From the NCBI GenBank assembly GCA_043228905.1, contig JBHGNT010000434.1:1-25855 (forward strand): DNA of 25,855 bases, read 5' to 3'. A model generated the notes under the pieces. It saw only the letters and a list, made by a program, of their open reading frames with translations. It did no database searches and was not told where the DNA came from. How positions within the stretch are numbered: position 1 is the stretch's first letter; the number at the start of each line of letters is the position of its first letter. Positions 201 through 24,510 of this stretch are shown piece after piece. Both the position numbers and the translations under genes were made by a program. This DNA is from Azolla caroliniana. Lineage: Eukaryota; Plantae; Polypodiophyta.

Positions 201-236
201 AACACGTTCGCGTTCACAAGTGGAAGGATCGCGCAT
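201..236 (+). repeat. Terminal inverted repeat (transposase-side end, left copy)
   Basis: AACACGTTCGCGTTCACAAGTGGAAGGATCGCGCAT; 35/36 identical to 14689-14724. Confidence 0.92.
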
Positions 237-4012: not shown

Positions 4013-4020
4013 TATAAATA
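4013..4020 (+). promoter_or_regulatory. TATA box of the ParB-methyltransferase gene (left copy)
   Basis: CCTATAAATAG, 150 bp upstream of an ACCATG start at 4163 and followed by a UTR-like stretch. Confidence 0.65.
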
Positions 4021-4046
4021 GGAAGACCTCATCATATTTCACTCAC

Positions 4047-4109
4047 CAGAGCGTACAGAGCATACAGAGCACTCAGAGCACTCAGAGCACACAGAGCACA
4101 CAGAGCACT
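4047..4109 (+). repeat. 7 x 9-bp tandem repeat CAGAGC(A/G)(C/T)(A/T) in the predicted 5' UTR
   Basis: cagagcgta cagagcata cagagcact cagagcact cagagcaca cagagcaca cagagcact. Confidence 0.9.
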
Positions 4110-4162
4110 CAAGGCACAAAGCACGAAAGCGCGATCTCCGCCTCCACACAACACGATCAACC

Positions 4163-7100
4163 ATGTCTTCCAAGAGAGTCGAGCGCGAGGAGTCCAGGTA
4201 GGCCTCTGACACTGTGGACATTTTTGTAAATATGTTTCGTTTCCCGAAAAACTCGATACGGCGTATCGAGTTCATGTATACAATACAAATATTTATACAC
4301 GAACTCGATACGGCGTATCGAGTTCGTGTGTAAATATTTGTATTGTATACACGAACTCGATACGCCGTATCGAGTTCGTGTTTAAAGTAAAGGTTTTAAA
4401 CACGAACTCGATACGCCGTATCGAGTTCGTGTTTAAAAGGTCAGTTTTAAACACGAACTCGATACGGCGTATCGAGTTCGTGTTTAAAACCTTTACTTTA
4501 AACACGAACTCGATACGGCGTATCGAGTTCGTGTTTAAAACCTATACTTTAAACACGAACTCGATACGGCGTATCGAGTTCGTGTTTAAAACTTACCTTT
4601 TAAACAAGAACTCGATACGGCGTATCGAGTTCGTGTTTAAAACTTACCTTTAAACACGAACTCGATACGGCGTATCGAGATCGTGTTTAAAAGGTCAGTT
4701 TTAAACACGAACTCGATACGCCGTATCGAGTTCGTGTTTAAAAGGTCAGTTTTAAACACGAACTCGATACGCCGTATCGAGTTCGTGTTTAAAGTATAGG
4801 TTTTAAACACGAACTCGATACGCCGTATCGAGTTCGTGTTTAAAGTATAGGTTTTAAACACGAACTCGATACGGCGTATCGAGTTCGTGTTTAAAGTGTA
4901 GCCTTTGAGAGAGAAAAATCGTTTACGGGGTGGAAATGTTATCAAATTGTCTGTCAAAATCAGTCTTTCTATGTTGAGTTTACTTACTTCTAAACAAATA
5001 CAAGCTCTAATTATAGGTGTTTTTTGACCTACTTTAGCTTAAAATAGTAGAAAATGATCTACAAATTGCATTCAATATGGCAAATTCTCATCAATATAGG
5101 TTTAGAATCTATATAAGTCATATCTACTATTTAAAAGAATATATAACCCGTTTTACTTATTACGATATATATTTTCTAGGTTGAATAGCCATGCCTACAA
5201 TAGATTTTTGAATATGTTACTGCTCCTAGAAACTGTTCTTCATTATAATAACAACTTTAATCTACGTAACTGTCTAACTTATGTTATGGTGGATACTTTC
5301 TTAAATAGGTCGTTTGAGAATCTGTCAGACCGACCCGTGAAGAAAATTAAGCTTCGCATACAAGGTTCTCCAATCGAAGCCCAGACCAAGGTAACTCCGG
5401 AGTCCATAAAGAGAGGAAAAAAGCTTCTATTTAACGAAGAGACAAAATCTCAGCCCCATAGTGATGTAAGCCAAAAGAAAATTGTCGCCGCTACTGGAGG
5501 CGAAGACCTTCCTGACCGAGATCTAACGGACAAGGAATGGTGTATGCAATATATCGACTCAAAGAAAAAAGTCGTATTGTATACATCAAAGAAGAAGGGT
5601 GAGGGGCAGCTAGGAAAAGAAACTCCATTTATGTATGGCCGAATTCTACGATTTGACTACGAAGATGCAGATTCGGCCAACATACTGGTAATGATAGAGT
5701 GCTCCAAGGGGGTACGCAAAGTGTTCCTTTCAGAAGACCTTTTAGTAAAGGAATCTTGTGGGCCTGAAGTGTTCAAAAAAGCACTTGATAACTCACAAAA
5801 CCTGATTGTTACCTTGAGGCCTTATATACAAGGCCATGTAACTCTACGAGATGAAGAGCCCTCCCACTTGAAGGCCACTAAAAAGGTATCCAAAGTCCAG
5901 TCAAGACCAGCCAAGAAGAAGACAACGAAAATGTCGGATACGGATTCGACAAGTGACAATGAAGAAGAGGATAATAAGGGGACGCCAGGAGCCGAGCTGG
6001 CCTCGGGTGTTTTGTCATCCGAGCAGAATAAAATAAGAAGAGAGTTAATGAAACGGAAGCTGGTCAGGAAAGGGCAAGTATTTAATTTGCCTATAACACA
6101 CATCCATCGGCCCCCTATTGATGAAAAAACAGGTCGAAGACCACTTGAGATTAGAGAGCCTCATCGCATGCATGTTCAAAATCTCAAGAAAAAAATGAAA
6201 ATTAATCCTCATGCCACAGTGGTGCCTTTTATTGTTATGGTGGATCCTGAAGAATGTGAAACCATTGAAGATTTTGATATTAGAAAGCATGATCAATATA
6301 ATTATTTTGTCATTGGTGGATCGCATTCAGCAGAGGCACGTCGACAACTTGTCAGAGAACATCCAACCACTTTCTTCTTCAAGTATGCCGAGTGCAAAAT
6401 ATATGTTGGGCTCACAACCGAAGAGGCTAAGCTGTTGGCATGGGACCATAATAATGATAATGACTATAGGCAGAAAATGTCGTCTATTGAGCGAATCCGG
6501 TTCTTCCACCACGAGTATTTAGATGTGAAACAAAAGTTTGGTGTGAAGTTACATCCAGGCCTTCGACGTCAATGTCTGCATGAAGTCGGCATTGTGGTAG
6601 ATGATAATGTTAGGTCCGATGGTCTTCGAAAGTATGAATCTTGGTTTCAATTGGCGTTTAGAGATGGAGAAGTATGGGACCTCCAAGATCAAATCTTCTC
6701 AATGTGGGAGAATAAGGAGGTAAAGGGTCAACGACAAAAGAAATGTAGGGTTGACCCTCAACTAGAATTAAAGTCACAAGCCGCCAAGAGAATTGACTTG
6801 ACAATTGAAGAAGCGGCAGACGACATGAAGCTGTCTCTATGGAGAGCGATGCAAGGTATTAAGGACGAGCAGCTTCTTGTGTCCGTTTTGTCAAGGGTTG
6901 TGGCGAAAGATTTAAGCCTTGAAGAAATGGTCACCGAGTTCAATAAGTAAGTCTTTCAAATACTGAAATTGTAGTCTATCTGGTGTAATTCAAAGTTCTA
7001 ATCTTGATTTCTAATTTTACAGTCATAAGGTGTACATGAAGATCCAAGAAGTAATGATGAAACAACTTGGATGTATAACTTGGGAACAAGTGACCGAGGC

Positions 7101-8195
7101 GTTATCAGAGTATTTTATTGCATTCAAGGATTGGGTTAGTATTGATATTTTTTCATTACCCTTTCATCATATGTAGAGGTTGCGTAATAATACCTGATGT
7201 CCTATTGCTTCTATTAGAAACCGTGTCGAGGCAAGAAACAAGGAGAAGTTAAGGATATACACGATTTCCCTACATCCTTCCTTGCACATCTCGAGCGAGC
7301 TAGAAAAGAAAAGGATCGTCGCTTAGTCAAGGCGTACGAAATGGAGGAAGATGGCTCGTTTAAAAAATTTAGCCACAAGAAAGATATTACGAGAGATCTT
7401 TACTACAATGTGGTTTGCGGTGATGTCATCGACTTGATCCAGAAGGTGCCAAAGAAGGAATATACGCTAATGATTGCGGATATTCCTTACGGATTTCGAA
7501 TGGCTGGGTCATCATACGACGATGAACCGTTTAGGTTTAAACAATTGGAGAAGATGGTCAAGGATTTCGCTGAGCTAACGACCGCATCCTTGTGGCGAAT
7601 AGTTGTCTTTCATAGTATGGACCAAGGGTACTCGGTAGCTCAAGCTTTGAGATCTCGTTGCCATGGCATCGAGAACCTTGCATGGTAAGGATTATTTATA
7701 GGTGTCTTTCATTATATTGCAATTCTTAAGGTTGTTGAATCTATTTTTAACTCGATGAATTATTTTTTATAGGATCAAGACCAATGTAAATAGAGGGCCA
7801 ACTTTTCGGTTCGTTAATGCCATTGAATACATAACGGTTGGCTACTTCGATGAAATTAAAAAACAGAGAATCAAAGAGCATTCTAATGAAGTGGGAGGTT
7901 CAAATCTGTTGGTATATCCAGCAGTGACTCGGAAATTGCGACATGTCACCACGACAGAACGGGGACTTGTCAACCCATACCAAAAACCTCAACGACTTAT
8001 GATGCGCTTGATCGAGATGTTTTCTGTCGAAGGAGACTGGATATTAGATCTCTTTTCTGGCACAGGTATTCCTCGAACTAGGGTAACGATCTTGAGATAA
8101 CCAATCCCTTTTTTTTCGTTTGACAACTAAATCTTCTTGTTACTTACATCACAGGAACTACGTCAGCATGGATACCCGATCTGTTAGGCCCTTAG
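4163..8195 (+). pseudogene. 3'-truncated copy of the spliced ParB-like/amino-methyltransferase gene
   Basis: Predicted exons 4163-4197, 5309-6946, 7023-7134, 7218-7684, 7773-8065, 8155-8170; all introns GT-AG and phase-compatible. After ...FSGTGTTSA the frame runs into Gypsy DNA (WIPDLLGP, stop at 8193-8195). Confidence 0.8.
4250..4895. repeat. Tandem array of 13 palindromic units (43-bp palindrome plus ~8-bp spacer, period 50-52 bp)
   Basis: TTTAAACACGAACTCGATACG-(G/C)-CGTATCGAGTTCGTGTTTAAA with centres at 4261, 4313, 4365, 4416, 4467, 4518, 4569, 4620, 4670, 4721, 4772, 4823, 4874. Units 1-3 have shorter arms and longer AT-rich linkers. Confidence 0.97.
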
Positions 8196-11097
8196 GGTTA
8201 ATCCGGAAACTATGCATCGTCATTGGCGGTCACCACTTTGACATCTCGGCGGTAGTACTCACACTCGACTCTCCGGAGCATACCCAATACTACTTGGCAG
8301 ACCTTGGCTTCATTCGGCGAACATCAAACATAGCTGGCAACATAATTGTATCAGTTTCCGACGAGGACGCAGTAAAGTTCGCGTACCCATAGAAGAAATG
8401 ACGGGGCATCCGAAAGGAATGACACCATTGTACACAGAAGACATAAATATGCTGGAAGGAGTGGACGATACAGAGGTAGAAGCGTACCTGGATGAGCACC
8501 CGCAAATCATCCCACTATTCGAAATTGACGTAATAGAAACTGTGGCGGAGTACGCTACTCCCACTACACTTCACAAAGAGGCTTATGAACCGGACCCAGA
8601 GTCGATACTGGAATTAAACCGAGCACGGGTCGCATTCGAGAAAGAAATGGAAATTTCACGACGAGTCACTGCCTTAGCATTGGAAGAAGTTAATGTAGGA
8701 ACGACAGCGAATCCCCGATTACTCTCCATCGCGAAAGACATACTACTAGATCAGAAAGAGGCGATGTTAGCTTTGCTCAAGGAATATAAAGATGTGTTCG
8801 TGTGGTCCCACGAAGACATGAAGGGATTAGATCCAAAATTCTACCAGCATAAGATCAATTTAGCTATCGACGTGAAACCTATTCAGCAGCATCGATACTG
8901 AATGAATCTGAACTACGCAACTCGTGTAAAAGAAGAAATTGACAAACTTCTCAAGGCTAGATTCATTCGACCAGTCAAGCAAGCTACGTGGCTGAGCCCG
9001 ATAGTCGTAGTTCCGAAGAAAAATGGAAAAATCCGCGTTTGCGTAGACTATTAGAAATTGAACGCCGTAACTATTACAAATGCGTTCCCCTTACCTTTCA
9101 CCGACAGCGTATTGGACAAAGCACTCAGTCATTTTCTAGGACAAATACATTGGCATAGTCGGATGTTACAATATCTAGCGGATTTCACCACGCCATTACA
9201 TGTCGCCGTCCACCGTACACCTTTCAACTGGACGACAACTAAAGAAAAGGCATACGATGCGCTTAAAATAATGTTGACTCAAGCACCAATCACCAGATTG
9301 GGGGAAACCATTTCACGTTTTTGTAGACGCCTCAGACATAACAAAAGGTAGTGTGTTGATGCAACTCATAGAGCTGACTTGGTACAGACCAGTATATTAT
9401 GCCAGTAGGAAGCTATCAAAGGTGGAGCGTAACTACTCCACAACGGAACAAGAAGCATTGGGGACGATATACAACATCAATCAATTCCGACATTATCTAC
9501 TGGGGCGGAAATTTACGTTTCACGTGGACCATACGGCGTTGCTATACCTCGTGGGGAAGCAAGCGCTAACACGAAAATTGGCTAGATGGATGTTGTTGCT
9601 CCAGGAGTTCGACTTTGTTATACAATATCGACCGGGTACGCAACACACTATAGCGGATTTCTTAAGCAAGATAGATAATGGAGAAATGGTGCGAAAGGAG
9701 GACGACGACTTTTCGGATGCAGACATCATGTAGATCACAACTATAGTGACATGTACAGAAAAAACTTTTCCCGATCGTTGGTTAATGGAGATGACATTCT
9801 TTCTTACCACTGGATTACCACCGCCACAATTAAGAACGGACGAAAAGAAACGATTGGCCGTCCAAAGTCGTAACTTTTGTTTGGTCGAAGGGGTCCTGTA
9901 TCACAAAGGCAGCGAAGGAATCTGGCGACACCGAATACGCCCAGATGAGAAGGAAGCGGTTTTACGCGAAGCGCACTGTGGTACAGCAGGAGGACACTAC
10001 ACGGGCGATGTTATGGCTCGTAAAGTCTGGCATGCCAGCCTATGGTGGGCGACTACGCAAAAGGATGCGTATGAATATTGCAAACAATGCACCCTGTGTC
10101 AACGGATAGGCCAGCCCACAGAGGTCGCAATGATGCCACATCAACCAGTGTTGCCATTGGATCCATTCCAGAAATGGGGAAATGGGGACTCAATTTCGTG
10201 GGGCCATTTACACCAGCGGCAGCTCGGACTAGCAATAAATATATACTCGTGGGTACTAATTATTGCACTAAGTGGGTGGAAGCGAAGGCACTACGAGAAA
10301 ATTTCGCGGCAGTGACGGAGAAATTTCTTTACGAACATATCTGGTGTCGTTTTGGCTGCCCTATTGAGCTCATTAGTGACCAAGCAAGCCACTTTCTGAA
10401 TTCGGCCATCCGGGAGCTGACACAACACTATGCCGTTGTCCACAAGAAGAGCACGTCATATTATCCACAGGCGAATGGTTTAGCGGAGTCCATGAACAAA
10501 ACGTTACAAACGATACTAAAAAAGATCATCAATGAGAACAAAACAGACCGGCATACCAAATTACACAGCGTGTTATGGGCGTACCAAACCAACTATAAGA
10601 CTAGCATACAATCCACGCCTTTCCGGCTAGCATTTGGGTTGGAGGCCGTAATGCCAATCGAATTTCAAGTACCCAGTCTGTGGATTCAGGTACGAGACTG
10701 GCTATTAGAAGACAAATCCGAACAAATATGGCTACAACAGCTGCTCGAACTAGGCGAGACACGATTACGAAGCATGGCCATATTGGAACAAGAGTAGTGT
10801 CGGCGTAAAGCATTCGTGGACCGGCATTGAAATGCACGTGAAAAAGATTTTGTGGTCGGCAAAGCGGTCCTAGTCTTTCAAACATGGATGGGGCAAATGC
10901 CAGGCAAATTAAGATTCCGCTGGACGGGGCCGTACTGGATCGCTAGCGCGGAAAATGACACGTTTCAACTAGGCACCCTGGCCGGGGAAGTGTTACGACA
11001 AAAGGTGAATGGGTTTCGACTAAAACCTTACCAGGGACCGGTGCCACCGAACCCGTTCCACGCTGTAAACAACACGGCCGAAGAATCCGCAGATTAA
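8171..11097 (+). pseudogene. pol: Gypsy pol pseudogene (protease C-half, internally deleted RT, RNase H, integrase)
   Basis: Protease end (RPLGLIRKL...YPILLGRPWL across a frameshift); RT N-terminus (WLSPIVVVPKKNGKIRVCVDY, FPLPF); RNase H (FHVFVDASD, YASRKL...NYSTTE.EALG); integrase HHCC (HCGTAGGH...CKQCTLC) and core (WGLNFVGPF, ISDQASHF, NGLAE). Confidence 0.93.
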
Positions 11098-12235
11098 TTA
11101 AAGGGACCCACCTATATTATAGTGTAACAGTAATATTGTATTTAACTGTTAGAAAAAGAAGAAGAAGATAGTGACGTTATTAAAAGGACTGGATGCATGC
11201 ACAAACTACTAGAGAAAGAACACGCGGCACCACGATGGCACACAGGCCAATGAACCCTAGGCCACAAAAAGAGGAAAGCAAAAGTTTTCTGCACGGTGCA
11301 GAAAATATTCTTCAGTCCTTAACCCTCCTCTCTTTCGTCGCTCTCCTCACTCACCCAACTCCCCATCCTACCACAGAGCCTGCGCCCGCCATAGCCAGCA
11401 AACATCATCCACTAACCACGAATCTCCTCCACCTACGATGCCGATCACTATTTCCGCCGCCTTGCGCATATGGCTTCTCAAAAAGAGACTGGATGGATAA
11501 ATCAAAGTCACCGAGGCACTTGCTCACCCTAAACCCTTGAAATTGCCAGGAAGCTCAACATAGGCACAGTCACCAACACTACCATCCAGAAGAAGCTTGA
11601 CTTATCATCGATTGGGGAGAAACATTTCGACATCCCTCCTGCGGAAACCCTATAGGGATATTTCAGGGCATATTCGGTGTCCGCCAAAACATACAGGACA
11701 AAGGAAATCCCCGACCCCTTCTTTCGAGAAATAGCCAAGTTCTTGTTGGAGGTAGGCCACCTGCACGTAAATGCCTATGGGATGCCAAAGCTGAAGGCAG
11801 GCATTATCATTGACACCTTTGAAGGGCGTGTGGTCGATTGAGGGGTAATTACGGGACCAGCTTTACAGGAAGGCCTGCACGTGTATCAGGGTGGCAAAAA
11901 GCTAAGGCCAATCATACAACAGTATCTGACGATACTATTTCCACCCCGAGTTCTGCCCGCACCACAGCCCAGCAAACCCACGCCACCACCACATTCCGAG
12001 AAACGGAGGTTAGCGGAGTTGGCTACCACAGAATGGGATGGTAAACCACAATCTTCCCAGCCCCGCACGCAAACAACACAAGGAGAACGGTTGGCAAGCA
12101 AGGAGGAAGCTCCACATGACCAAGAAGTCGAACAACGCCAAGAAAGCCCGAGGCCAAAACGGCGTAGGCTAGACCAGAAATATGGGTGCAGACTAGTCAA
12201 AGACACAACCGCGGACATAGACAAAACCGCAGAAA

Positions 12236-12912
12236 CAGACACGACCGCCTTGGTCGATAGTTACACAACTACGGAGCCCAACACCACTTTCGAAATAATC
12301 CGGGAACCACGGCCGATCATTACGGCCCAGTCGCAGCGTGGGACAGGTGTACTCACGGCGAAAAGCAAAGTCCTAAAGTACCAGGACATTCCGAATACAG
12401 CCCATGAGTTCAGTGCGCTACTACAATTTGGAACAACTTACGAACTCATGGATGTTTTGGCAGACACGACCACCTTGGTTGACAGTTACGCAACTACGGA
12501 GCCCAACACCACTTTCGAAATAATCCAGGAACCACGGACGATCATTACGGCCCAGTCGCAGCGTGGGAAAGGTGTACTCACGGCGGAAAGCGAAGTCCTA
12601 AAGTACCTGGACATTCCGGATACAGTCCATGAGTCCAGTGCGCTACTACAATTTGGAACAACTTACGAACTCATGGAATTTTTGGCAGACACGTCCGCCT
12701 TGGTTGACAGTTACGCAACTACAGAGCCCAACACCACTTTCAAAATAATCCGGGAACCACGGCCGATCATTACGGCCCAGTCGCAGCGTGGGAAATGTGT
12801 ACTCACGGCGGAAAGCGAAGTCCTAAAGTACCCGGACATTCCGGATACAACCCATGAGTTTAGTGCACTACTACAATTTGGAACAACTTACAAACTCATG
12901 GAATTTTTGGCA
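12236..12912 (+). repeat. 3 x 225-bp (75-codon) in-frame tandem repeat
   Basis: Units start CAGACACG at 12236, 12461 and 12686; peptide DTTALVDSY...LQFGTTYELM repeated three times. Confidence 0.93.
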
Positions 12913-14129
12913 ACACAGCAAATTAAGGTATCACAAAGAATGGCGAAGGAGCACGCAAAACAACAGATGATTGAGTGTGCGCTCACACAAACAACGGAAA
13001 GTGAGGATGAAGGGTCTCTAGCCAAGGTAGGCAAGCAACAGAATGTGGGGATTTGACATATGGGCATTGAACTACCTCCACTGAATGCGGCCCTGGTTGA
13101 GGTACATTGGGAATTGGCTAGAGTGAGTGTGGGGGCCAAGGATATGGCTAGCAAGAATAAAAACATGTGGAAAACAGCCAAGTTGACTCAAGCCCAATTA
13201 CAGAAGGGCCAAGAGCGCTTTACAAAGCTCGAACAGAGCGTTACTAGGGCACCGCAAAATCCTGAACCAACAGCGGGTGAGGACCCCTCGATAACCCTAC
13301 AAGAGGAGATAGCCGCACAACAGGCCTTCGCTGCTAAAGCAAAAAGGGCTACACAGCTTGCGAAGTCCGAGATTGACTGCCTCCGCTTCGAACTCCGCCA
13401 ATCCTCCGACAAAGAAAAGGACATACGGGCCAAAGGCCGAAAGGCAATGAAGGCACTCGAAGCGGAGGTAGCAAGCACACCCGCATGAAAGAAGAAAACA
13501 CCAAACTACAGGAGGAAGCCCAAAAGTTGGAAGCCGCGATCACAGGACTCCAGGAGTTATTGGAAAAGAAGAAAGTGTGGTACGACAAGCAGCTCATATG
13601 AGAGCAGGAGGTGAGGCATCAGGTCAAAGTTCACCTGAACAATGAAATGGGCCAGCTGGAGGAATTACACTTGAAAGAATCCCAGATATGGGCAAGGATG
13701 AAGAACCATTATGAGGAAGCGGTTGTGGTTAATAAGCATGAAATCGAAAACCTCAAAAAAACCCTGGAAGAAGCGCACAACCGTTGCCAAGTCATAACGA
13801 ACAACGTGCGCATACTTCTTCAAACAAATCGGGAGAGGTTTACGGCGCAATTACAAGCAACGGTAGACAAAGGCTGGATGGCGTGGGCAACACAAGCGGC
13901 GAGTTGCATACCTACTGGGCGGACTGGGAAAACCGTAGAAAAGAAGGCCGAGGTTTCTACAAGCTCAATGAGGAAGGCATTGCGGCAGTACGCGAGGAAC
14001 AAACACAGGATTATCGCACGCTAGCGGACCAACACTCCGAGGAACTTGCGCAGCTTCTGGACGATTTCAGCGAAAGTCAGGACGATATGTTTCACCGAAT
14101 CATGGAAGCAAGCAGCATGCGGCAAAGAG

Positions 14130-14321
14130 CGGAGCCCATCACGATACCAGAAAGTGAAACCGTAGAACAACAGGAACCTCAACCCAATTCTCCGGAGATG
14201 ACAACTATGGTAAGCAACACACGTCTAAGAACGGAGCCCATCGTGATACCAGAAAGTGATACCGTTGAACAGGAGGAACCTCAGCCCAATTCACTGGAGA
14301 TAACAATTACGGTCGGCAACA
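14130..14321 (+). repeat. 2 x ~102-bp in-frame repeat (EPI.IPES.TVEQ.EPQPNS)
   Basis: CGGAGCCCATC at 14130 and 14232, with matching downstream sequence. Confidence 0.8.
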
Positions 14322-14568
14322 CTGAGGAAGTTACGGATAGGACAGAGCCTCAACCTACCGAGAGCCCGCAGACGGAAGAGCCAGCCATAGTAGAACGGAA
14401 TGAGCCAATAGAGCTGGGTCCGCCCACGTAGGGAGAAGTTTACGCCATGGAAACCCCCATGACGACCGAGGAAGTACAAGATAGGCAACTGAGCAATGAC
14501 GCTCCTACGGGCACTGCATCGTCCTCGAACCAGTACGTAGGAGCGGAGCCAAACATCCGGGATATTTT

Positions 14569-14590
14569 GGAGGAAGAATAGAGGGATGGG
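14569..14590 (+). other. Polypurine tract of the Gypsy element
   Basis: GGAGGAAGAATAGAGGGATGGG, two bases before TGAT at 14593. Confidence 0.65.
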
Positions 14591-14592
14591 TC

Positions 14593-14688
14593 TGATGTGC
14601 CATGGCACTGTCCCACAGGCGTGCCAGGTGTTGTCCAATGGAATCGTAACCGACGGACAGAAGCGCAAAAATATTATAATGTAGTAAA
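14593..14688 (+). mobile_element. 5' part of the Gypsy 3' LTR, interrupted by the DNA transposon
   Basis: TG start just after the PPT; ends in TAAA (14685-14688), which is repeated at 23994-23997. Confidence 0.6.
14685..14688 (+). other. Target-site duplication TAAA (left)
   Basis: gtagTAAA|AACACG...CGTGTT|TAAAgcg. The A/T run allows a slightly different register, but this one gives a perfect 4-bp duplication. Confidence 0.75.
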
Positions 14689-14724
14689 AACACGTTCGCG
14701 TTCACAAGTGGAAGGATTGCGCAT
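14689..14724 (+). repeat. Terminal inverted repeat (methyltransferase-side end)
   Basis: AACACGTTCGCGTTCACAAGTGGAAGGATTGCGCAT. Confidence 0.92.
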
Positions 14725-15056
14725 TCCACTTGTAGAATCTTCTTAAAACGAAGCAAATACACCCTCTCTACAATAATTGGATGCACTAGTATCACATGTT
14801 CCTCAACTTGATAAGAATTTGCAAATATAAAAATACATGATAGATCTACGAGTGGAGATCATTAGAAATCATGCAAGTTTAGACATGTTGATAAGTTAAT
14901 GTATCTAAATAAAGTTCAACTATGGCTCAATATGGCACTATTGTGCGACAAGGGAAACACTAACTTAAAGACTTATATTAATTAGGTAGGTTTTACAAAA
15001 TTATGAGGTGTACTTGTATCCATACTAATAAAATGAGATATAATTTATACTTTGAG

Positions 15057-15341
15057 CCATACGTGCATGTATGTAATTGTCGAAAATGTAGGATAGTGCA
15101 CATTAGGATAAGTGATTGGAATAACTAACTTATTAAAGTATTCAATACTTATATTAAAAGTTGATCTAATCTATTCCTCAGTTTGTTCATATGGGATCAA
15201 ACCATATGTGTATATAATTGTGCACAATGTAAGGCAGTGAACTTTAGGATAATGTCGTGGAAATAACAAACCTATTAGGCTTTCATACCTATATTTAAAA
15301 TTGATCTACTCTATTGCTTAGGTGATTCACACAAGATCAAA
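15057..15341 (+). repeat. Degenerate ~145-bp tandem duplication in the subterminal region
   Basis: 15057-15201 and 15202-15341 share collinear blocks: ccata, taattgt, aatgta, ttaggataa, aataac, ttgatcta.tctatt, gatcaaa. Confidence 0.7.
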
Positions 15342-15736
15342 CTCCGAACGATAACGCAACTGGAACCATTATCAACACACTACACAATCTAAGCAGCAAT
15401 GGAATAGAAACTAGACCTGTTTTAACAATATAAGACAAAGATCCATAATAACAACATGGACAGTCATGGCAATAATTATAGGGCCATGTTCTGTTAAGGT
15501 TAGCTTGGACCAAAATCAGCCTCCATTTAAGCTAGTTCATGTTTCTCCATAAGTTTGGTAGTCAGCTATGCACGCGGTGAAACCAATATCATAAATCTAC
15601 TAATGAGGTATATAAAAATAAAATTGAAACATATAGATGATTATAAAGAATAGAATCCACTAGGTAAAACCCAAAATTTGTATTAATAATGTGAAATCTT
15701 AACAAATCGTCAGTGTCATATTCTTTATAGAGTCTA

Positions 15737-18700
15737 TTACATAGCAATCAATTCATCTACGTCATTTTCTTCATCATCTTGTGTAGAACTGTCTTCGGCT
15801 ATACGTGCATTGGTTTCCCCTGTTAGCCGGGCCAACGAAATATCTTCTATAAGCTCATCATCAAGCTCTATTAGCTCTCCCGGTTCGCCGGCTAACGGAG
15901 GAATAGGCTCTCGCGAAGCGGGTTGAAACCTTTCTGTATTGGCGAGGTTCTTTGCACCGACCTCCTCATCCTGGTCTGGGCACTCCCACAAAGCCTTAAT
16001 CCGCATATTAATAAATATAACTTGGTCCTCGTCCTTCTCCAATGCAACTGTATTCCTAAACAGCTTCAATGCACATGCTGACGTAGTTCCTGTGATGTAA
16101 GTAACAAGAAGATTTAGTTGTCAAACGAAAAAAAAGGGATTGGTTATCTCAAGATCGTTACCCTAGTTCGAGGAATACCTGTGCCAGAAAAGAGATCTAA
16201 TATCCAGTCTCCTTCGACAGAAAACATCTCGATCAAGCGCATCATAAGTCGTTGAGGTTTTTGGTATGGGTTGACAAGTCCCCGTTCTGTCGTGGTGACA
16301 TGTCGCAATTTCCGAGTCACTGCTGGATATACCAACAGATTTGAACCTCCCACTTCATTAGAATGCTCTTTGATTCTCTGTTTTTTAATTTCATCGAAGT
16401 AGCCAACCGTTATGTATTCAATGGCATTAACGAACCGAAAAGTTGGCCCTCTATTTACATTGGTCTTGATCCTATAAAAAATAATTCATCGAGTTAAAAA
16501 TAGATTCAACAACCTTAAGAATTGCAATATAATGAAAGACACCTATAAATAATCCTTACCATGCAAGGTTCTCGATGCCATGGCAACGAGATCTCAAAGC
16601 TTGAGCTACCGAGTACCCTTGGTCCATACTATGAAAGACAACTATTCGCCACAAGGATGCGGTCGTTAGCTCAGCGAAATCCTTGACCATCTTCTCCAAT
16701 TGTTTAAACCTAAACGGTTCATCGTCGTATGATGACCCAGCCATTCGAAATCCGTAAGGAATATCCGCAATCATTAGCGTATATTCCTTCTTTGGCACCT
16801 TCTGGATCAAGTCGATGACATCACCGCAAACCACATTGTAGTAAAGATCTCTCGTAATATCTTTCTTGTGGCTAAATTTTTTAAACGAGCCATCTTCCTC
16901 CATTTCGTACGCCTTGACTAAGCGACGATCCTTTTCTTTTCTAGCTCGCTCGAGATGTGCAAGGAAGGATGTAGGGAAATCGTGTATATCCTTAACTTCT
17001 CCTTGTTTCTTGCCTCGACACGGTTTCTAATAGAAGCAATAGGACATCAGGTATTATTACGCAACCTCTACATATGATGAAAGGGTAATGAAAAAATATC
17101 AATACTAACCCAATCCTTGAATGCAATAAAATACTCTGATAACGCCTCGGTCACTTGTTCCCAAGTTATACATCCAAGTTGTTTCATCATTACTTCTTGG
17201 ATCTTCATGTACACCTTATGACTGTAAAATTAGAAATCAAGATTAGAACTTTGAATTACACCAGATAGACTACAATTTCAGTATTTGAAAGACTTACTTA
17301 TTGAACTCGGTGACCATTTCTTCAAGGCTTAAATCTTTCGCCACAACCCTTGACAAAACGGACACAAGAAGCTGCTCGTCCTTAATACCTTGCATCGCTC
17401 TCCATAGAGACAGCTTCATGTCGTCTGCCGCTTCTTCAATTGTCAAGTCAATTCTCTTGGCGGCTTGTGACTTTAATTCTAGTTGAGGGTCAACCCTACA
17501 TTTCTTTTGTCGTTGACCCTTTACCTCCTTATTCTCCCACATTGAGAAGATTTGATCTTGGAGGTCCCATACTTCTCCATCTCTAAACGCCAATTGAAAC
17601 CAAGATTCATACTTTCGAAGACCATCGGACCTAACATTATCATCTACCACAATGCCGACTTCATGCAGACATTGACGTCGAAGGCCTGGATGTAACTTCA
17701 CACCAAACTTTTGTTTCACATCTAAATACTCGTGGTGGAAGAACCGGATTCGCTCAATAGACGACATTTTCTGCCTATAGTCATTATCATTATTATGGTC
17801 CCATGCCAACAGCTTAGCCTCTTCGGTTGTGAGCCCAACATATATTTTGCACTCGGCATACTTGAAGAAGAAAGTGGTTGGATGTTCTCTGACAAGTTGT
17901 CGACGTGCCTCTGCTGAATGCGATCCACCAATGACAAAATAATTATATTGATCATGCTTTCTAATATCAAAATCTTCAATGGTTTCACATTCTTCAGGAT
18001 CCACCATAACAATAAAAGGCACCACTGTGGCATGAGGATTAATTTTCATTTTTTTCTTGAGATTTTGAACATGCATGCGATGAGGCTCTCTAATCTCAAG
18101 TGGTCTTCGACCTGTTTTTTCATCAATAGGGGGCCGATGGATGTGTGTTATAGGCAAATTAAATACTTGCCCTTTCCTGACCAGCTTCCGTTTCATTAAC
18201 TCTCTTCTTATTTTATTCTGCTCGGATGACAAAACACCCGAGGCCAGCTCGGCTCCTGGCGTCCCCTTATTATCCTCTTCTTCATTGTCACTTGTCGAAT
18301 CCGTATCCGACATTTTCGTTGTCTTCTTCTTGGCTGGTCTTGACTGGACTTTGGATACCTTTTTAGTGGCCTTCAAGTGGGAGGGCTCTTCATCTCGTAG
18401 AGTTACATGGCCTTGTATATAAGGCCTCAAGGTAACAATCAGGTTTTGTGAGTTATCAAGTGCTTTTTTGAACACTTCAGGCCCACAAGATTCCTTTACT
18501 AAAAGGTCTTCTGAAAGGAACACTTTGCGTACCCCCTTGGAGCACTCTATCATTACCAGTATGTTGGCCGAATCTGCATCTTCGTAGTCAAATCGTAGAA
18601 TTCGGCCATACATAAATGGAGTTTCTTTTCCTAGCTGCCCCTCACCCTTCTTCTTTGATGTATACAATACGACTTTTTTCTTTGAGTCGATATATTGCAT

Positions 18701-20031
18701 ACACCATTCCTTGTCCGTTAGATCTCGGTCAGGAAGGTCTTCGCCTCCAGTAGCGGCGACAATTTTCTTTTGGCTTACATCACTATGGGGCTGAGATTTT
18801 GTCTCTTCGTTAAATAGAAGCTTTTTTCCTCTCTTTATGGACTCCGGAGTTACCTTGGTCTGGGCTTCGATTGGAGAACCTTGTATGCGAAGCTTAATTT
18901 TCTTCACGGGTCGGTCTGACAGATTCTCAAACGACCTATTTAAGAAAGTATCCACCATAACATAAGTTAGACAGTTACGTAGATTAAAGTTGTTATTATA
19001 ATGAAGAACAGTTTCTAGGAGCAGTAACATATTCAAAAATCTATTGTAGGCATGGCTATTCAACCTAGAAAATATATATCGTAATAAGTAAAACGGGTTA
19101 TATATTCTTTTAAATAGTAGATATGACTTATATAGATTCTAAACCTATATTGATGAGAATTTGCCATATTGAATGCAATTTGTAGATCATTTTCTACTAT
19201 TTTAAGCTAAAGTAGGTCAAAAAACACCTATAATTAGAGCTTGTATTTGTTTAGAAGTAAGTAAACTCAACATAGAAAGACTGATTTTGACAGACAATTT
19301 GATAACATTTCCACCCCGTAAACGATTTTTCTCTCTCAAAGGCTACACTTTAAACACGAACTCGATACGCCGTATCGAGTTCGTGTTTAAAACCTATACT
19401 TTAAACACGAACTCGATACGGCGTATCGAGTTCGTGTTTAAAACTGACCTTTTAAACACGAACTCGATACGGCGTATCGAGTTCGTGTTTAAAACTTACC
19501 TTTTAAACACGATCTCGATACGCCGTATCGAGTTCGTGTTTAAAGTATAGGTTTTAAACACGAACTCGATACGGCGTATCGAGTTCTTGTTTAAAAGGTA
19601 AGTTTTAAACACGAACTCGATACGCCGTATCGAGTTCGTGTTTAAAGTATAGGTTTTAAACACGAACTCGATACGCCGTATCGAGTTCGTGTTTAAAGTA
19701 AAGGTTTTAAACACGAACTCGATACGCCGTATCGAGTTCGTGTTTAAAACTGACCTTTTAAACACGAACTCGATACGGCGTATCGAGTTCGTGTTTAAAA
19801 CCTTTACTTTAAACACGAACTCGATACGGCGTATCGAGTTCGTGTATACAATACAAATATTTACACACGAACTCGATACGCCGTATCGAGTTCGTGTATA
19901 AATATTTGTATTGTATACATGAACTCGATACGCCGTATCGAGTTTTTCGGGAAACGAAACATATTTACAAAAATGTCCACAGTGTCAGAGGCCTACCTGG
20001 ACTCCTCGCGCTCGACTCTCTTGGAAGACAT
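15737..20031 (-). CDS. Six-exon, ~965-aa ParB/Srx-like domain plus beta-class N6-adenine/N4-cytosine DNA methyltransferase fusion
   Basis: Predicted exons 20031-19997, 18935-17298, 17221-17110, 17026-16560, 16471-16179, 16089-15737 = 2,898 nt, one open frame, all GT-AG. ParB-like segment IREPHRMHVQNLKKKM...VPFIVMV...YFVIGGSHSAEARRQL...AECKIY. MTase motifs in beta order: VVCGDVIDLI, LMIADIPYG (motif IV), WIKTN, NPYQKPQRLMMRLIEMFS, WILDLFSGTGTT (motif I), RNTVALEKD. Exon 1 and the exon 2 acceptor are the least certain parts. Confidence 0.85.
19349..19944. repeat. Tandem array of 12 palindromic units in intron 1 of the ParB-methyltransferase gene
   Basis: Centres at 19370, 19421, 19472, 19523, 19574, 19625, 19676, 19727, 19778, 19829, 19881, 19933. 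Confidence 0.97.
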
Positions 20032-20084
20032 GGTTGATCGTGTTGTGTGGAGGCGGAGATCGCGCTTTCGTGCTTTGTGCCTTG

Positions 20085-20147
20085 AGTGCTCTGTGTGCTC
20101 TGTGTGCTCTGAGTGCTCTGAGTGCTCTGTATGCTCTGTACGCTCTG
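20085..20147 (-). repeat. 7 x 9-bp tandem repeat in the predicted 5' UTR (mirror of 4047-4109)
   Basis: Repeated (a/t)gtgctctg units on the + strand. Confidence 0.9.
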
Positions 20148-20173
20148 GTGAGTGAAATATGATGAGGTCTTCC

Positions 20174-20181
20174 TATTTATA
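20174..20181 (-). promoter_or_regulatory. TATA box of the ParB-methyltransferase gene
   Basis: TATTTATA on the + strand = TATAAATA on the - strand, 150 bp upstream of the ATG at 20031. Confidence 0.65.
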
Positions 20182-20854
20182 GGGATTGAACCCATGGTTA
20201 AAGTAACCATAGTTATCTTAACCAATGTTGGTAACTTTGAGGATAGTTAGTTTGTAACCATAGTCACATTAACTATAGTAACTTATGATTGTATTAATGA
20301 TTACAAAGTCAAACTAATATATTGATCAATCTTTTATACTCATAACAACCTACAATCACTTCAAAGGTTATGAAGGAGACAATGATAGAGGTTCATGAAT
20401 GTACCAATGATTGATTACTAAAAGCAAAAATTTTTATGACTCTCAATAGTTATGTATTAAAGATGTGGGCATGAATTAACCAATGATTGATAAGTCTAAT
20501 AATTAAAATGGTGAGCCTTAAAGAATCAATGAGTGAGACGTTCTATATCAAAATGGGTGTCATTAATTAGCCAATGATTTTAACATTAATCCAACATATT
20601 CAAGGCTTGTTAATGATTAGTTTTATATTTTACTTGATTTAACATCATTTAGATCTAGTTTATATAATGATTGATAATTTAAGTTAAATTACTTTATTAA
20701 AAATAATTTTTAGATGTATTGTATTTTAATAGAATATTACATAATATAGACATTCTATTGATTTGGCTTTTGTTTAGAGAGAAGTTTATGTTTAGGGAGG
20801 AGTATATGGTTAGAGAGGAGTATAACTTAGAGAGCCCTATCTAGACCTTAAGCC

Positions 20855-23635
20855 ATGAGTGAAGATTCACCGTTCTCGATTGAAGAATATTGTTTGTCAT
20901 CAGACACATCGTTTTCTACTGAAGAGTATTGTTTATCAACAGAGTCACCATATTCGATTGAAGAATATTGTCTTTCGACCGACTCACCAAATTCTATCGA
21001 AGAATATTGTCTGAGCTCATCTACAGGGAATGCAAATAATGACACATGTGAAGAGTTCTCTATTGAAGAATACGATATTAATAAAGATACCGGGAATGAA
21101 GGAAGTGCCCAGGAAACATTGAATAACATTGGCGATGGTCAGAACAGAGAATTAGACTGTAACAAGGTTACACCAACCTCTATGCAGGAAGAGAAATCTG
21201 GGAGCCCTATGCATATTAGAAGAATCCCACGAAGAATTCGTCTGGCTAGATTTAGCTTGGTGACATCAGATAAACAGATTGGATTTGATGTCAACAAAAT
21301 ATGTTGTGCCCGTGGTTGTATGTCTATGATTGGAAAATCAAAGTTGCGAGAATTAAGGCGATACTATTTTTCGATGACCGGTGATGAGCAAGACACTTAC
21401 CTCGGATCACATATGCAACTAGTATCTGACAAATGTACGGGGATCAAAGTATCATTCGAGTATTATATCTTCCATGCGCAACAGATATGTAGAGTTGCAT
21501 TCAAAATTGTGTTATGTGTTAGTAACATGCGGCTACATAGAGTACAACAACGTCTACTTAGCGGGGATCAGATGCTCAATTGTAAAGAGGTTCCAAGTAT
21601 GAAAGGTGCAATTGGAAGACTAGCTATTGGCTGGATGAAAACTTACTTTCAGTTAAATTGTGAAGTAATGCCCACTACAGGTAGGATGCATCTTTCTGAT
21701 AATTATACCCGTCGGGAAGTTTATGATGTCTATCGATCTGAAATGTTGGGCTCACGTAATAAGTCTATCACCTATAGCCAATTCACAAGATTATGGAGAG
21801 CTCGGTTTTCAAATGTTATTATTCCTCGTAAAGTACGTATGGGTTATTGCTCCATTTGTGCAAATCTTAAAAGTTTGGCTAAAGGTGCAAAGACATCAAT
21901 GGAAAAGGATACGAGTAAGAAGTTACTACAAGAGCATCGCGAGGCACAATCCTTAGAACGAAGGAAGGCGATGCATCATAGAGAGAAGTGTTTGAAGAGG
22001 CCTGAACAATACATGTGCTTAATGATAGATGGCATGGACCAGAAGAAGACATGCTTGCCGCATATGCGGAGGCTCCCCAAAGATGTCAATGATGAGTGCC
22101 TTGTTCAAATGCACTTGGTGGGATGCTTGGCTTATAATAGGTCTGTTCGACCTCACGTCTTCATTACTTACCCCAATGTTCACAATGACCCTAACCTAAC
22201 AGTTACAGTGATTCACCGAGTTTTGATGTCTTGGGGACAACCTTTCCCCCCTGTTCTATACATTCAATTGGACAATACTGCTAGAGAGAACAAAAATTCA
22301 ACTGTATTTGGCTATCTAAGTATGTTGGTCAACCTAGAATTGTTTAGGAAAGTGAAAGTCAATTTCCTTTTGGTTGGCCACACACATGACCATATAGATC
22401 AGATGTTTAGCACATTCTCCAGACAGTTGTCTCGGCATGATGCTTTCACTTTACCTAAACTATTTGATGTCATTTGTGATGCATATACACCACGCCCAAA
22501 AGTGTTACACTTGAAGGAGGTATATGACTTTAAGAGATATATATTAGATGGGGGTGGTGGGAATGTTAAAGTGCTTGCTCAGTTAAACAATATAAGTTTC
22601 AATCACATTTTTTTGATAAAGAAAAATGGAATAAGTGGTTCTACACTTTTGTATGCTAAACAATATTCATCTTCTACAACATGGGAACCTAAAGGTGGTT
22701 GCCAGTTATTACTTTGTATGCCGAGTACAATTGTCCATGGAGCTAAGCAAATGCCAATTGAGAAGAAAGGACAGTTGCAGAGCGACTTGGTATTAGAACA
22801 AAAACGGTCATGGCTCCAAGCCTTAGAAGAAAAAAGAAAACATATTGAGGCCGCCAAGAAATATGCCGCACAACAAGACACGTCATGGTGGGATGTATTT
22901 TATAGTGATCAGAAAGAAATTATAGACAATTGTGTATCTGTTGATAATTGGAATTTGGAAACGCCATTCACATGGTCGCTGCAACATGATCGCGTAAATA
23001 GAAGTCCGGAGCGACTAGTAAATGCGATTAATGACAGCTTGGTCCATCCACAACAAAGAGACATTTATGTGGGACCAAGGATGACCAAAGCAGCCGAAGC
23101 TAGATGGCAAGGAAATTTGCAAGAGCTCACCGCGGGGATGTTGATTGCAACGCCGGCTGATGAGAACTCACATGGCCACCAATTTTGGGTTGGTAAAATT
23201 CTAGAAGTGCTAATGCATGAAATAGATAACACGATCAAGTCTATAAATGTTCATTGGTACAACACTAGAAGTGCAAATGCTTTTACAGGTAAGTATACAT
23301 TGGAGATGATTGAATGCCAAACAAGAAGGGGAGGTAGGAAGAGGAAGCGAAACATTCGTAACACCTCGACCCTTGATATCTCTGATGTGGATATCATCGT
23401 GTACGACTTCACACTTACAAAAGCCGGACGATTAAGGAAGTCAACAATAGATATAATAAAAGAAAAATTACCAGGTCTACAAGGTGGCTCGAGTCAAAGG
23501 CAAACGAGATCTGCTACATATAATCTAGAGTCAAACCATTTGGTTTATGACGAAGATAATGCACTGATTGGTACATCCGAGGATGATGAGGAGGAATCGT
23601 CATTGTATATTAGTTATAGTAGTGATTCTCCGTAA
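20855..23635 (+). CDS. 926-aa Sola/DUF7869-like DDD transposase (copy 2, in the complete element)
   Basis: Intact single ORF with GCCATG start; motifs IDGMDQKK, QLDNTARENKN, VGHTHDHIDQMFS; NLS-like RRGGRKRKR; acidic tail. Confidence 0.85.
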   Translation: MSEDSPFSIEEYCLSSDTSFSTEEYCLSTESPYSIEEYCLSTDSPNSIEEYCLSSSTGNANNDTCEEFSIEEYDINKDTGNEGSAQETLNNIGDGQNRELDCNKVTPTSMQEEKSGSPMHIRRIPRRIRLARFSLVTSDKQIGFDVNKICCARGCMSMIGKSKLRELRRYYFSMTGDEQDTYLGSHMQLVSDKCTGIKVSFEYYIFHAQQICRVAFKIVLCVSNMRLHRVQQRLLSGDQMLNCKEVPSMKGAIGRLAIGWMKTYFQLNCEVMPTTGRMHLSDNYTRREVYDVYRSEMLGSRNKSITYSQFTRLWRARFSNVIIPRKVRMGYCSICANLKSLAKGAKTSMEKDTSKKLLQEHREAQSLERRKAMHHREKCLKRPEQYMCLMIDGMDQKKTCLPHMRRLPKDVNDECLVQMHLVGCLAYNRSVRPHVFITYPNVHNDPNLTVTVIHRVLMSWGQPFPPVLYIQLDNTARENKNSTVFGYLSMLVNLELFRKVKVNFLLVGHTHDHIDQMFSTFSRQLSRHDAFTLPKLFDVICDAYTPRPKVLHLKEVYDFKRYILDGGGGNVKVLAQLNNISFNHIFLIKKNGISGSTLLYAKQYSSSTTWEPKGGCQLLLCMPSTIVHGAKQMPIEKKGQLQSDLVLEQKRSWLQALEEKRKHIEAAKKYAAQQDTSWWDVFYSDQKEIIDNCVSVDNWNLETPFTWSLQHDRVNRSPERLVNAINDSLVHPQQRDIYVGPRMTKAAEARWQGNLQELTAGMLIATPADENSHGHQFWVGKILEVLMHEIDNTIKSINVHWYNTRSANAFTGKYTLEMIECQTRRGGRKRKRNIRNTSTLDISDVDIIVYDFTLTKAGRLRKSTIDIIKEKLPGLQGGSSQRQTRSATYNLESNHLVYDEDNALIGTSEDDEEESSLYISYSSDSP
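20858..21016 (+). repeat. 4 x 39-bp (13-aa) in-frame repeat at the transposase N-terminus
   Basis: DSPFSIEEYCLS / DTSFSTEEYCLS / ESPYSIEEYCLS / DSPNSIEEYCLS, plus a partial FSIEEY; mirrored at 3178-3336. Confidence 0.9.
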
Positions 23636-23957
23636 AGGAGTGATCATGAATGTATATTTGGCTATTAAGTGTAACTACATTCCGCTTGTAACAAATCGAG
23701 TAATATAAAATCATGTGTTTTGAATTCTTATGATTTCCCAAAAATCGTTTCTTATAAAATAACATTGGTTGTAAAGTTGGTGATATAAATTGAGAATGTA
23801 TGTTTTTGAAATTCGTCTTTTTTTAGTTACTTCTAAATCACGAAAATAGTGGATTTTTAACCTTTTTCATAGTATGTTTGAACTTGTATGATACTGGTAT
23901 CAATGTGTTTTGTAAAATCATTGAAAAACCCCTAAAATTTCCCTTATCCTTCCATTT

Positions 23958-23993
23958 ATGCGCGATCCTTCCACTTGTGAACGCGAACGTGTT
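23958..23993 (-). repeat. Terminal inverted repeat (transposase-side end)
   Basis: ATGCGCGATCCTTCCACTTGTGAACGCGAACGTGTT; reverse complement of 14689-14724 with one mismatch. Confidence 0.92.
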
Positions 23994-23997
23994 TAAA
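23994..23997 (+). other. Target-site duplication TAAA (right)
   Basis: Directly follows the TIR and matches 14685-14688. Confidence 0.75.
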
Positions 23998-24510
23998 GCG
24001 TTAACAAACAAATGTAATGGTTCACGCGGGAAGCGTGAACGGCTAAAAACCCTGTGTATATAAAGGGCAGAAATCCTCTGTAAGAGGTAGTGTGTAATTT
24101 TGGAGTATAGAGCGTTTTTCTAATAAATTACTATCTTCTCGGATATCTGTGCATATCTGTGGCTTTCTCTGTTGCATTCTTGGTTTCTCTGTTGCGTACT
24201 GTTAATCGTAAGGGTGTAGGTGTAAGCGCGGATCCCAGCGCACTTCCTAAAGAGTTCAGTTGTAGACGTCTCCCTTATACGCTACTAGGATACGAGGGAG
24301 TATCCCATTACGATTTACGGTACGAAGGTTCTATTCCTTTTAACACGGTCACCTTGAGGTCTACCTCGAAGGACTGAGCGTAGACAGTGTTCTTAATCGG
24401 TAACAGTAGGCCATTGGAGGTCTACACTCCTAGACTATTATGTAGTTATCCGAGGAGTTAGTGTCTGATGCTCTATACGAGCACTGAACTACTTGTCAGT
24501 ACTTCTATCA
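23998..24510 (+). mobile_element. Remainder of the Gypsy 3' LTR (3' end tentative)
   Basis: Continues the pre-insertion site; TATA-like TATATAAA near 24057; candidate end ...TATCA at 24510 pairs with the TGAT start at 14593. No second LTR in the window to confirm. Confidence 0.45.

Follow-up and report, generated by a model that had tools for sequence, protein, structure and literature searches.

A DNA transposon of Azolla caroliniana that combines a DUF7869 transposase gene with a predicted ParB-like amino-methyltransferase gene and a palindrome array

Mobile elements that carry a DNA-modifying enzyme of their own are already known, and TET/JBP enzymes, for example, are carried by KDZ transposons. 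We analyzed a 25,855-nucleotide stretch of DNA from Azolla caroliniana (contig JBHGNT010000434.1), here called the window, in which a DNA transposon at 14689-23993 encodes a transposase and, divergently, a spliced protein with a predicted ParB-like DNA-binding part and a C-terminal amino-methyltransferase (amino-MTase), associated with an array of palindromes. The added feature here is a putative targeting module. Fusions of ParB with an N6_N4 MTase are typical of phages and prophages (Iyer et al., PMC4738411; bioRxiv 10.1101/2025.10.10.680097), and DUF6551 is listed among the phage ParB-fold partners (bioRxiv 10.1101/2025.10.10.680097); neither survey mentions transposons or plants. Chlorophytes and chytrids encode a fusion of ParB and helix-turn-helix (HTH) domains with a Dam-type enzyme (Iyer et al. 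2016, PMC4738411), and Dam-type MTases occur in eukaryotic retrotransposons (bioRxiv 10.64898/2026.05.21.726589). The PF01555-type writers of N4-methylcytosine (4mC), namely N4CMT of bdelloid rotifers (PMC8885841) and MpDN4MT1 of Marchantia (bioRxiv 10.1101/2021.02.12.428880), are host genes, and the rotifer enzyme is without eukaryotic homologues according to Rodriguez et al. A search of about 8.4 million full-text papers and preprints, with Repbase outside the search, gave no account of a DNA transposon that carries both a ParB-MTase and a cis array.

The locus shares features with each of these systems. As in the phage fusions, a ParB-fold N-domain is predicted to precede PF01555, there is a link to mobile DNA, and weak DUF6551 matches are found in the plant family. 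Unlike the phage genes, however, the plant gene is eukaryotic, spliced and nuclear and lies on a transposon with terminal inverted repeats (TIRs) beside a putative DDD transposase, and its product adds a beta domain and a KorB-like HTH and is associated with a palindrome array. The chlorophyte and chytrid proteins likewise join a ParB-type DNA-binding module to an adenine methylase in eukaryotes, but their MTase is a group-2 "chlorophyte-type Dam" rather than a beta-class N6_N4 enzyme, no transposon or cis array is described for them, and the hosts are others. In common with other transposon-borne DNA modifiers (Dam-type enzymes in retrotransposons, DNMTs in retroelements and TET/JBP), a mobile element carries a prokaryotic-type mark enzyme that presumably acts on the element itself. 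In contrast to the retrotransposon Dam-type MTases, the enzyme found here is of the beta-class N6_N4 kind and sits on a DNA transposon of land plants and Chara, together with a dedicated DNA-binding module and a candidate cis array.

Two oppositely oriented copies of one element lie in the window, of which copy B (14689-23993, 9.3 kb) is complete. Copy B is bounded by 37-bp TIRs at 14689-14725 (plus strand) and 23957-23993 (minus strand), which are reverse complements of each other with one mismatch, and by the target-site duplication (TSD) TAAA at 14685-14688 and 23994-23997 (4 identical nucleotides). An initial annotation of this DNA had described a eukaryotic DNA transposon bounded by TIRs and a TSD and carrying two intact divergent genes, and both statements hold: the plus strand has an intact 926-aa open reading frame (ORF) and the minus strand a six-exon gene with GT-AG borders throughout. 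The 27-nucleotide TIR core occurs three times in the window compared to zero expected, and homologous TIRs are present at the related loci L002 and L004 (related loci are numbered with the prefix L). The TSD was read directly from the sequence of copy B, a single copy, and is a short A/T-rich match. It was not replicated at L002 or L004, where the flanks do not match; the contig flanks at these two loci are probably a mix of several copies from multi-copy assemblies. A 4-bp A/T-rich TSD agrees with that reported for Sola2 (PMC3627910).

The transposase gene (20855-23635, plus strand) encodes a 926-aa protein with a DUF7869 domain (PF25273, E value of 1.8e-51). DUF7869 is formally a domain of unknown function and was mentioned in no paper in a full-text literature search. 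In an AlphaFold model built from an alignment of fern and animal homologues, residues 370-548 superpose on the catalytic cores of retroviral integrase and IstA (Z score of 9.7, root mean square deviation of 2.9 A, 128 residues). Foldseek alone gave weak matches to the model (best E value of 2.5e-3), every one of them an RNase H-like enzyme. The alignment with the fern and animal homologues has conserved blocks in which two acidic residues, D395 and D473, are invariant and a third, D515, is nearly so. Because an RNase H-like core, an acidic triad and TIRs are found together, the modeled structure supports the view that DUF7869 is a DDD transposase with an integrase-like catalytic core, in agreement with the earlier assignment of this large plus-strand ORF. 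The N terminus of the protein derives from 3.5 tandem 39-bp repeats (20876-21010) encoding SIEEYCLS-type peptides and is predicted to be disordered (pLDDT of about 30).

The divergent ParB-MTase gene consists of six exons, all with GT-AG borders and consistent phases, that sum to 2898 nucleotides, or 965 codons plus a stop, the same length as the spliced 965-aa product expected from the initial annotation. All lie on the minus strand. Predicted exon 1 (19997-20031, 35 nucleotides) was read from the sequence, begins with an ATG (MSSKRVEREES) and fits the phase of exon 2. Predicted intron 1 (18936-19996) has a donor CCAG|GTAGGC at 19996 and an acceptor TAAATAG|G at 18936, restores the frame exactly and holds the entire palindrome array. 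Exon 2 (17298-18935) encodes a disordered N terminus, a beta domain, the ParB N-domain and the HTH, as assigned with the structure model, Foldseek and VIA. Exon 3 (17110-17221) encodes a linker (HKVYMKIQEVMMK...), and its junction with exon 2 reproduces that of the annotated Ceratopteris protein P0019. Exon 4 (16560-17026) contains the conserved catalytic motif IV, ADIPYGF, and is 40% identical to the Ginkgo protein P0073. Exon 5 (16179-16471) encodes PYQKP and the motif I sequence LDLFSGT and aligns to M.RsrI. Exon 6 (15737-16089) has its acceptor AG at 16091-16090, continues the frame as FSGT|GTTSACALK and encodes the remainder of motif I (GTT...), an acidic tail and the stop TAA; it is conserved in tblastn comparisons from L002 to L011.

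Upstream of exon 1, a TATA box of this gene, CTATAAATAGG, lies at 20172-20182 on the minus strand. It aligns with a box in L002, where the short CAGAGCA-type repeats that follow it are conserved too, and L004 and L007 likewise have TATA boxes ahead of their arrays. In the window, seven 9-bp CAGAGCAC(A/T) repeats occupy 20076-20147 (minus strand) between the TATA box and the predicted ATG, and a similar CAGACAGA-type repeat is found at the corresponding place of the ParB-MTase gene in L002 (3567-3668).

The C-terminal part of the protein is, by sequence, an amino-METHYLTRANSFERASE of the beta class (N6_N4). The exons were searched one by one, with the annotated Ginkgo protein P0073, which aligns to window exons 4 and 5 at 40 to 42% identity, as a full-length proxy. 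The exon-5 piece scored above the PF01555 threshold (34.2 bits, with a cut-off of 26.7), and the full-length relatives P0073 and P0080 matched PF01555 with E values of 8e-18 and 6e-10, respectively. Motif IV, ADIPYGF (exon 4), precedes motif I, LDLFSGTGTT (split between exons 5 and 6), in the permuted order of the beta class. An amino-MTase had been proposed for the spliced gene, and the PF01555 score and the motif order both bear this out. The catalytic tetrad D-I-P-Y is within the (D/N/S)PP(Y/F) type, with the second proline replaced. Motif IV is invariant in the ferns and Riccia, reads DFPYGF in L012 and Chara and D-I-P-H in one Ginkgo copy, and motif I is kept throughout.

We additionally compared the MTase with enzymes of known structure and specificity. 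With the Ginkgo proxy as query, the nearest solved enzymes were M.RsrI, CcrM, M.MboIIA and DpnA, all of them adenine methylases (E values of 2e-7 to 1e-3), whereas the N4-cytosine enzymes scored worse (N4CMT, 0.09; PvuII, 0.14). The target base is not predictable from the sequence of a PF01555-type domain, a point also made by Rodriguez et al., and we therefore only lean toward N6-adenine over N4-cytosine. Of the initial proposal of a writer of N6-methyladenine (6mA) or 4mC, the beta-class amino-MTase stands, but 4mC is less favoured given the DIPY motif and the adenine-type nearest solved enzymes. N4CMT and MpDN4MT1 are, like the present family, permuted PF01555-type amino-MTases of bacterial origin in eukaryotic nuclei, and this family also occurs in a liverwort, Riccia. 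However, those enzymes are SPPY-type (TSPPY in MpDN4MT1) host genes, N4CMT with a chromodomain, whereas the transposon family is DIPY-type and scores better against adenine enzymes than against N4CMT (E values of 2e-7 and about 0.1, respectively). Kinship with the Marchantia 4mC writers was considered and is unsupported by the motif, DIPY compared to the reported TSPPY, the comparison being one of motif descriptions.

The DNA-binding part of the protein was assigned by fold only. An AlphaFold2 model of the exon-2 region had a mean pLDDT of 63, rising to about 80 in the ParB-like domain. With this model, Foldseek retrieved CTP-bound ParB, Noc and KorB with E values of 8e-6 to 3e-3 over about 290 columns, followed by sulfiredoxins. 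An independent VIA search of 48,161 representative chains agreed, ranking first PadC (Z score of 10.1), KorB (9.2, residues 299-589), SerK (8.9) and Arabidopsis sulfiredoxin (8.1, 27% identity). The modeled HTH that follows the N-domain matched the DNA-binding domains of KorB with its operator (1r71, Z score of 5.5) and SopB (Z score of 4.0), both at residues ~430-589. The ParB/sulfiredoxin fold expected from the initial annotation was thus recovered by two aligners, and the modeled fusion protein would have a ParB-type N-domain followed by a KorB/SopB-like HTH. A confidently modeled beta-rich domain precedes the ParB part at residues ~110-225 (window positions 18400-18750). Its matches were middling, with the M18BP1 SANTA domain first (Z score of 6.2) and then PH-like folds (about 4.5), and a protein atlas search with it returned scores of 0.77, which is noise.

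In structure, residues ~296-589 match best KorB of plasmid RK2, ParB/parS and Noc/NBS, which are HTH proteins acting as dimers on short palindromes; the operators of KorB lie in promoters, and the plant array adjoins divergent promoters. The plant protein differs from them in having no sequence similarity, a box II without arginines, no ParA or KorA partner, and an MTase in place of the C-terminal dimerisation domain. Its candidate sites also differ, numbering up to 15, being phased at 51 bp and reaching 47 bp in length. No ParA-like ORF was seen in the two-gene element or the related loci, and a self-association prediction for residues 296-589 scored 0.02, which is evidence neither way.

The palindrome array spans 19344-19944 and contains 12 palindromes with a 51-bp period (TRF score of 806, 11.7 copies). 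Twelve near-perfect palindromes had been reported; a palindrome scan recovered 12 cores, of which nine are in units with at most one mismatch (43-47 bp, arms of 20-23 nucleotides), and the three at the transposase-side end (19810-19944) are variants. The array, composed of inverted blocks, has 6 CpG per unit and a CpG observed/expected ratio, by count, of 3.0 compared to 0.5-1.0 elsewhere. It had been placed between the main coding regions of the two genes. It adjoins the divergent promoters and, more precisely, lies inside predicted intron 1 (19996-18936) of the ParB-MTase gene. The 8-bp spacers (19392-19800) are of two classes, GTAWAGGT and AGGTMAGT, found in both orientations; the spacer version AGGTAAGT is identical to the 5' splice-site consensus, a point of possible relevance should the array be intronic. 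The 3' end of MTase exon 4 also carries a lone 22-bp palindrome with one mismatch, TCTCGATGCC|ATGGCAACGAGA (16570-16591). The core of this palindrome is ATGC-type, as in the arrays of other subfamilies, and the Ceratopteris and Riccia arrays lie in the intron just upstream of that exon.

Related palindromes accompany the ParB-MTase gene at 13 of 13 loci, from ferns, liverworts and metagenomes, whose sequence extends to the 5' flank or the first introns of the gene (L008 begins too close to it), so the co-occurrence of gene and array that was put forward at the outset as a check held at these loci. Their number is one (L004 to L006, L009, L012), two (L003), three (L015), about seven (L001 and the intergenic array of L011), eight (L002, L010), 12 to 13 (window) or 15 (L007). 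The central core AT(G/A)C...G(C/T)AT is common to the palindromes of all subfamilies. The outer arms are subfamily specific, with both arms altered symmetrically, as in AACTCGATAC (window), CCCAACTCGATAC (L010) and GGAAGTCGATGC (L007) and, in Riccia, TGTATGCG (subfamily 1) and ACCCATGCG (subfamily 2). The array periods are 51 bp (window, L002, L007 and L010), 31 bp (L001), 42 bp (L011) and 21 bp (a second Riccia element), close to 5, 3, 4 and 2 helical turns, respectively. Such helical phasing is suggestive of proteins bound to one face of duplex DNA. The second Riccia element is a DUF7869 element in L011 of Riccia sorocarpa (18070-22093), with a different palindrome, TCCATGA-N3-TCATGGA, in 21-bp arrays flanking and within the transposase gene.

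Homologues of the ParB part were found in Ceratopteris, many fern-like ENA contigs, Ginkgo, Riccia sorocarpa, Chara braunii and unassigned metagenome contigs, and several carry PF01555 in the same protein. The divergent pair of transposase and ParB-MTase is present in L002, L003, L004, L006, L007, Riccia L011 and L012, the last a distant intronless version of 789 aa whose parts are 32 to 39% identical to those of the window. In Ceratopteris, Ginkgo and Chara, the fusion protein was found alone. Chara braunii has a 1825-aa protein, P0068, in which three ParB-like stretches accompany PF01555, as well as a locus, L013, where two ParB-MTase-like units lie in tandem. Between the fern subfamilies, the ParB core and MTase exons show a nonsynonymous divergence (dN) of 0.04-0.2 against saturated synonymous divergence (dS), with dN/dS of 0.02-0.12 where computable. 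Because dN is far below saturated dS and the catalytic motifs are invariant, these sequence comparisons indicate that both genes are kept by purifying selection. The window element is best read as an autonomous transposon of the cut-and-paste type from an old streptophyte family. When viral contigs were scanned with the family profile, no relative turned up, and a viral origin of the ParB-MTase was set aside; no prokaryotic relative of the ParB part was identified.

Our best overall explanation, which we regard as evenly poised between right and wrong, is that palindromes bound by the HTH hold the MTase on the element and that local amino-methylation controls its promoters and/or its transposition. 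HTH dimers of the ParB-MTase protein would bind the phased palindromes in a manner analogous to parS or the KorB operators, and this would hold the MTase on the element's own DNA beside the divergent promoters. The element would then be locally amino-methylated, with N6-adenine expected and N4-cytosine less probable as the target. The probable outcome would be control of the two promoters and/or transposition, either by KorB-like autoregulation or by a self-supplied Dam-like mark as in the timing of IS10/Tn5 transposition. Long-range spreading is not part of the proposal. We favor the ParB-MTase as the binder of the palindromes because of their dyad symmetry, conserved core and helical phasing, the KorB/SopB-like HTH, and the persistence of palindromes beside the ParB-MTase gene. 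From the anatomy, folds, motifs, selection and co-occurrence described above, we infer the binding, the methylation in cis and its consequence. A wider statement of the idea is that plant and charophyte transposons encode a complete self-addressed epigenetic writer, in which a ParB/KorB-like reader docks on the array and delivers a 6mA/4mC MTase, and a private mark distinct from host 5-methylcytosine (5mC) controls expression or transposition. Taken as a whole, this statement is tentative and rather doubtful. Self-recognition or resistance to 5mC silencing as the purpose of such a system is speculation.

Several observations weigh against this explanation. No ParB was detected by sequence: Pfam ParBc was absent and there was no PDB match in searches with the single sequence and two family profiles, and the lone sequence-level match was a weak one to DUF6551 (9 of 13 family members, best E value of 0.0025). 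Box II of the family reads VIGG[S/N/C/G]H[S/T]xxA[R/K], with both glycines invariant and no arginine at the positions where GERRxR has them. Sulfiredoxin has GGCHR, which resembles the box II of the family. Since the canonical arginines are absent, loading by a CTP clamp or spreading is not assumed. Exon 1, and hence the intronic position of the array, is predicted from sequence, and the predicted ATG is not conserved in L002. The palindrome arms of 20-23 nucleotides exceed the usual footprint of an HTH dimer, the Riccia palindromes are scattered over the entire element, and the palindromes of the second Riccia DUF7869 element would fit a transposase-linked role too. The Chara locus L013, which is long and has uncertain gene models, showed no palindromes of a matching kind. 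In addition, palindrome type is phylogenetically confounded with protein clade.

The alternative that survives best, although we consider it unlikely, is that the palindromes are internal transposase-binding sites, serving as a transpositional enhancer or copy-number sensor (compare the internal activation sequence of Mu and the paired TnpA motifs of En/Spm), and that the ParB-MTase is cargo serving some other role. In favor of this, the array sits between the two genes and near the transposase promoter, the Riccia palindromes occur across the element, including near both gene ends, the second DUF7869 element has its own arrays, and the outer arm of the window palindrome shares AAACACG with the TIR tip. 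However, the window and L002 have almost identical TIRs and different palindrome arms, which argues that the arms are independent of the end sites of the transposase, and the arms of L004 are unlike its TIR. As a general explanation, mimicry of the transposon end by the array units was therefore rejected. Palindromes also persist, at Ceratopteris L001 and Riccia L015, in the intron ahead of the MTase exons with no intact transposase adjacent, and the one oyster DUF7869 locus examined, a single control, has neither ParB-MTase nor array. Perfect dyad symmetry also fits HTH dimers better than end binding by a DDE transposase.

A slightly less likely alternative is that the array acts as a nucleic-acid structure, either as twelve ~20-bp hairpins in intron 1 RNA or as DNA cruciforms; the hairpins could enter small-RNA pathways and so serve self-limitation or host silencing. 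The location of the array in predicted intron 1, downstream of a TATA box at several loci, would allow its transcription into RNA, the length of the arms suits a hairpin, and the paired changes in the arms would be preserved by structure alone as well. Pure structure would permit drift, however, whereas a specific central core is kept across very divergent subfamilies, and spacing by near-whole helical turns is a property of duplex DNA. The single-copy versions (L004 to L006, L009 and L012) would be poor sources of small RNA, and Rfam gave no matches in the window.

We regard as improbable a third alternative, in which the palindromes are mainly a substrate of the MTase, or of host CG methylation, and form a CpG-dense, methylation-sensitive switch in the 5' region, with the ParB-like domain serving another purpose, for example nucleotide binding or nuclease activity. 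The CpG density of the array is in keeping with this, the fern cores have TCGA/ATCGAT-type sites, and the L002 units have GAATTC, the M.RsrI site. But no short target is common to all subfamilies, the Riccia cores being without TCGA, the symmetry reaches far past a 4- to 8-bp methylase site, and the conserved HTH is left unexplained. That the array is a functionless, satellite-like repeat grown by replication slippage or hairpin-mediated duplication and associated with the gene by descent agrees with its copy number of 1 to 15, its inverted blocks and the one-unit difference between the two otherwise identical window copies, but it is very improbable given that palindromes sit at comparable positions although the proteins are 32 to 40% identical and synonymous sites are saturated and that symmetric two-arm changes and helical phasing point to constraint.

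The second element copy in the window, copy A (1-8170, minus strand), is inverted and truncated. It is the reverse complement of 16074-24193 outside the array, including 200 bp beyond the right TIR up to the window edge, with 0 differences from copy B over the 7505 bp compared there (3255 plus 4250 positions). Its array has one unit more than that of copy B (12.8 compared to 11.7 copies). Copy A contains flank (1-200), TIR (201-237), transposase, array (4250-4901) and the ParB-MTase as far as exon 6, and it breaks off within this last MTase exon at the start of a Ty3/gypsy-type fragment. Because the identity runs 200 bp past the right TIR, copy A is a partial inverted duplication of copy B and its flank rather than an independent insertion, and it represents either an assembly artefact or a very recent duplication produced by aberrant transposition or by fold-back repair. 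The Ty3/gypsy-type retroelement fragment, at 8171-14688, has frameshifts (RT_RNaseH, E value of 1e-24; rve, 2e-7) and reaches the left end of copy B. Its domains are followed by a 391-aa ORF holding three 225-bp tandem repeats (12236-12916) and by more repeat-rich ORFs, and copy B appears to have inserted into this sequence.

Whether multicellular eukaryotes methylate their DNA at amino groups (6mA/4mC) is under dispute, and very few enzymes that write these marks are known. The family described here provides a conserved bacterial-type amino-MTase with intact catalytic motifs, present in many copies in ferns, Ginkgo, liverworts and Chara, with a candidate target on the same element. With it, the emerging theme of mobile elements that bring a DNA-modifying enzyme along reaches the DNA transposons of land plants, in this case with a putative targeting module built into the enzyme. 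The question is directly testable with existing long-read data and in a transformable fern or liverwort. If the proposal is true, the element would represent the first amino-methylation system of multicellular plants that is targeted by sequence, as well as a naturally occurring device that couples a binding-site array with a tethered writer. If the pairs of ParB-HTH and palindrome are specific, the subfamilies would represent several orthogonal natural binder-and-site pairs.

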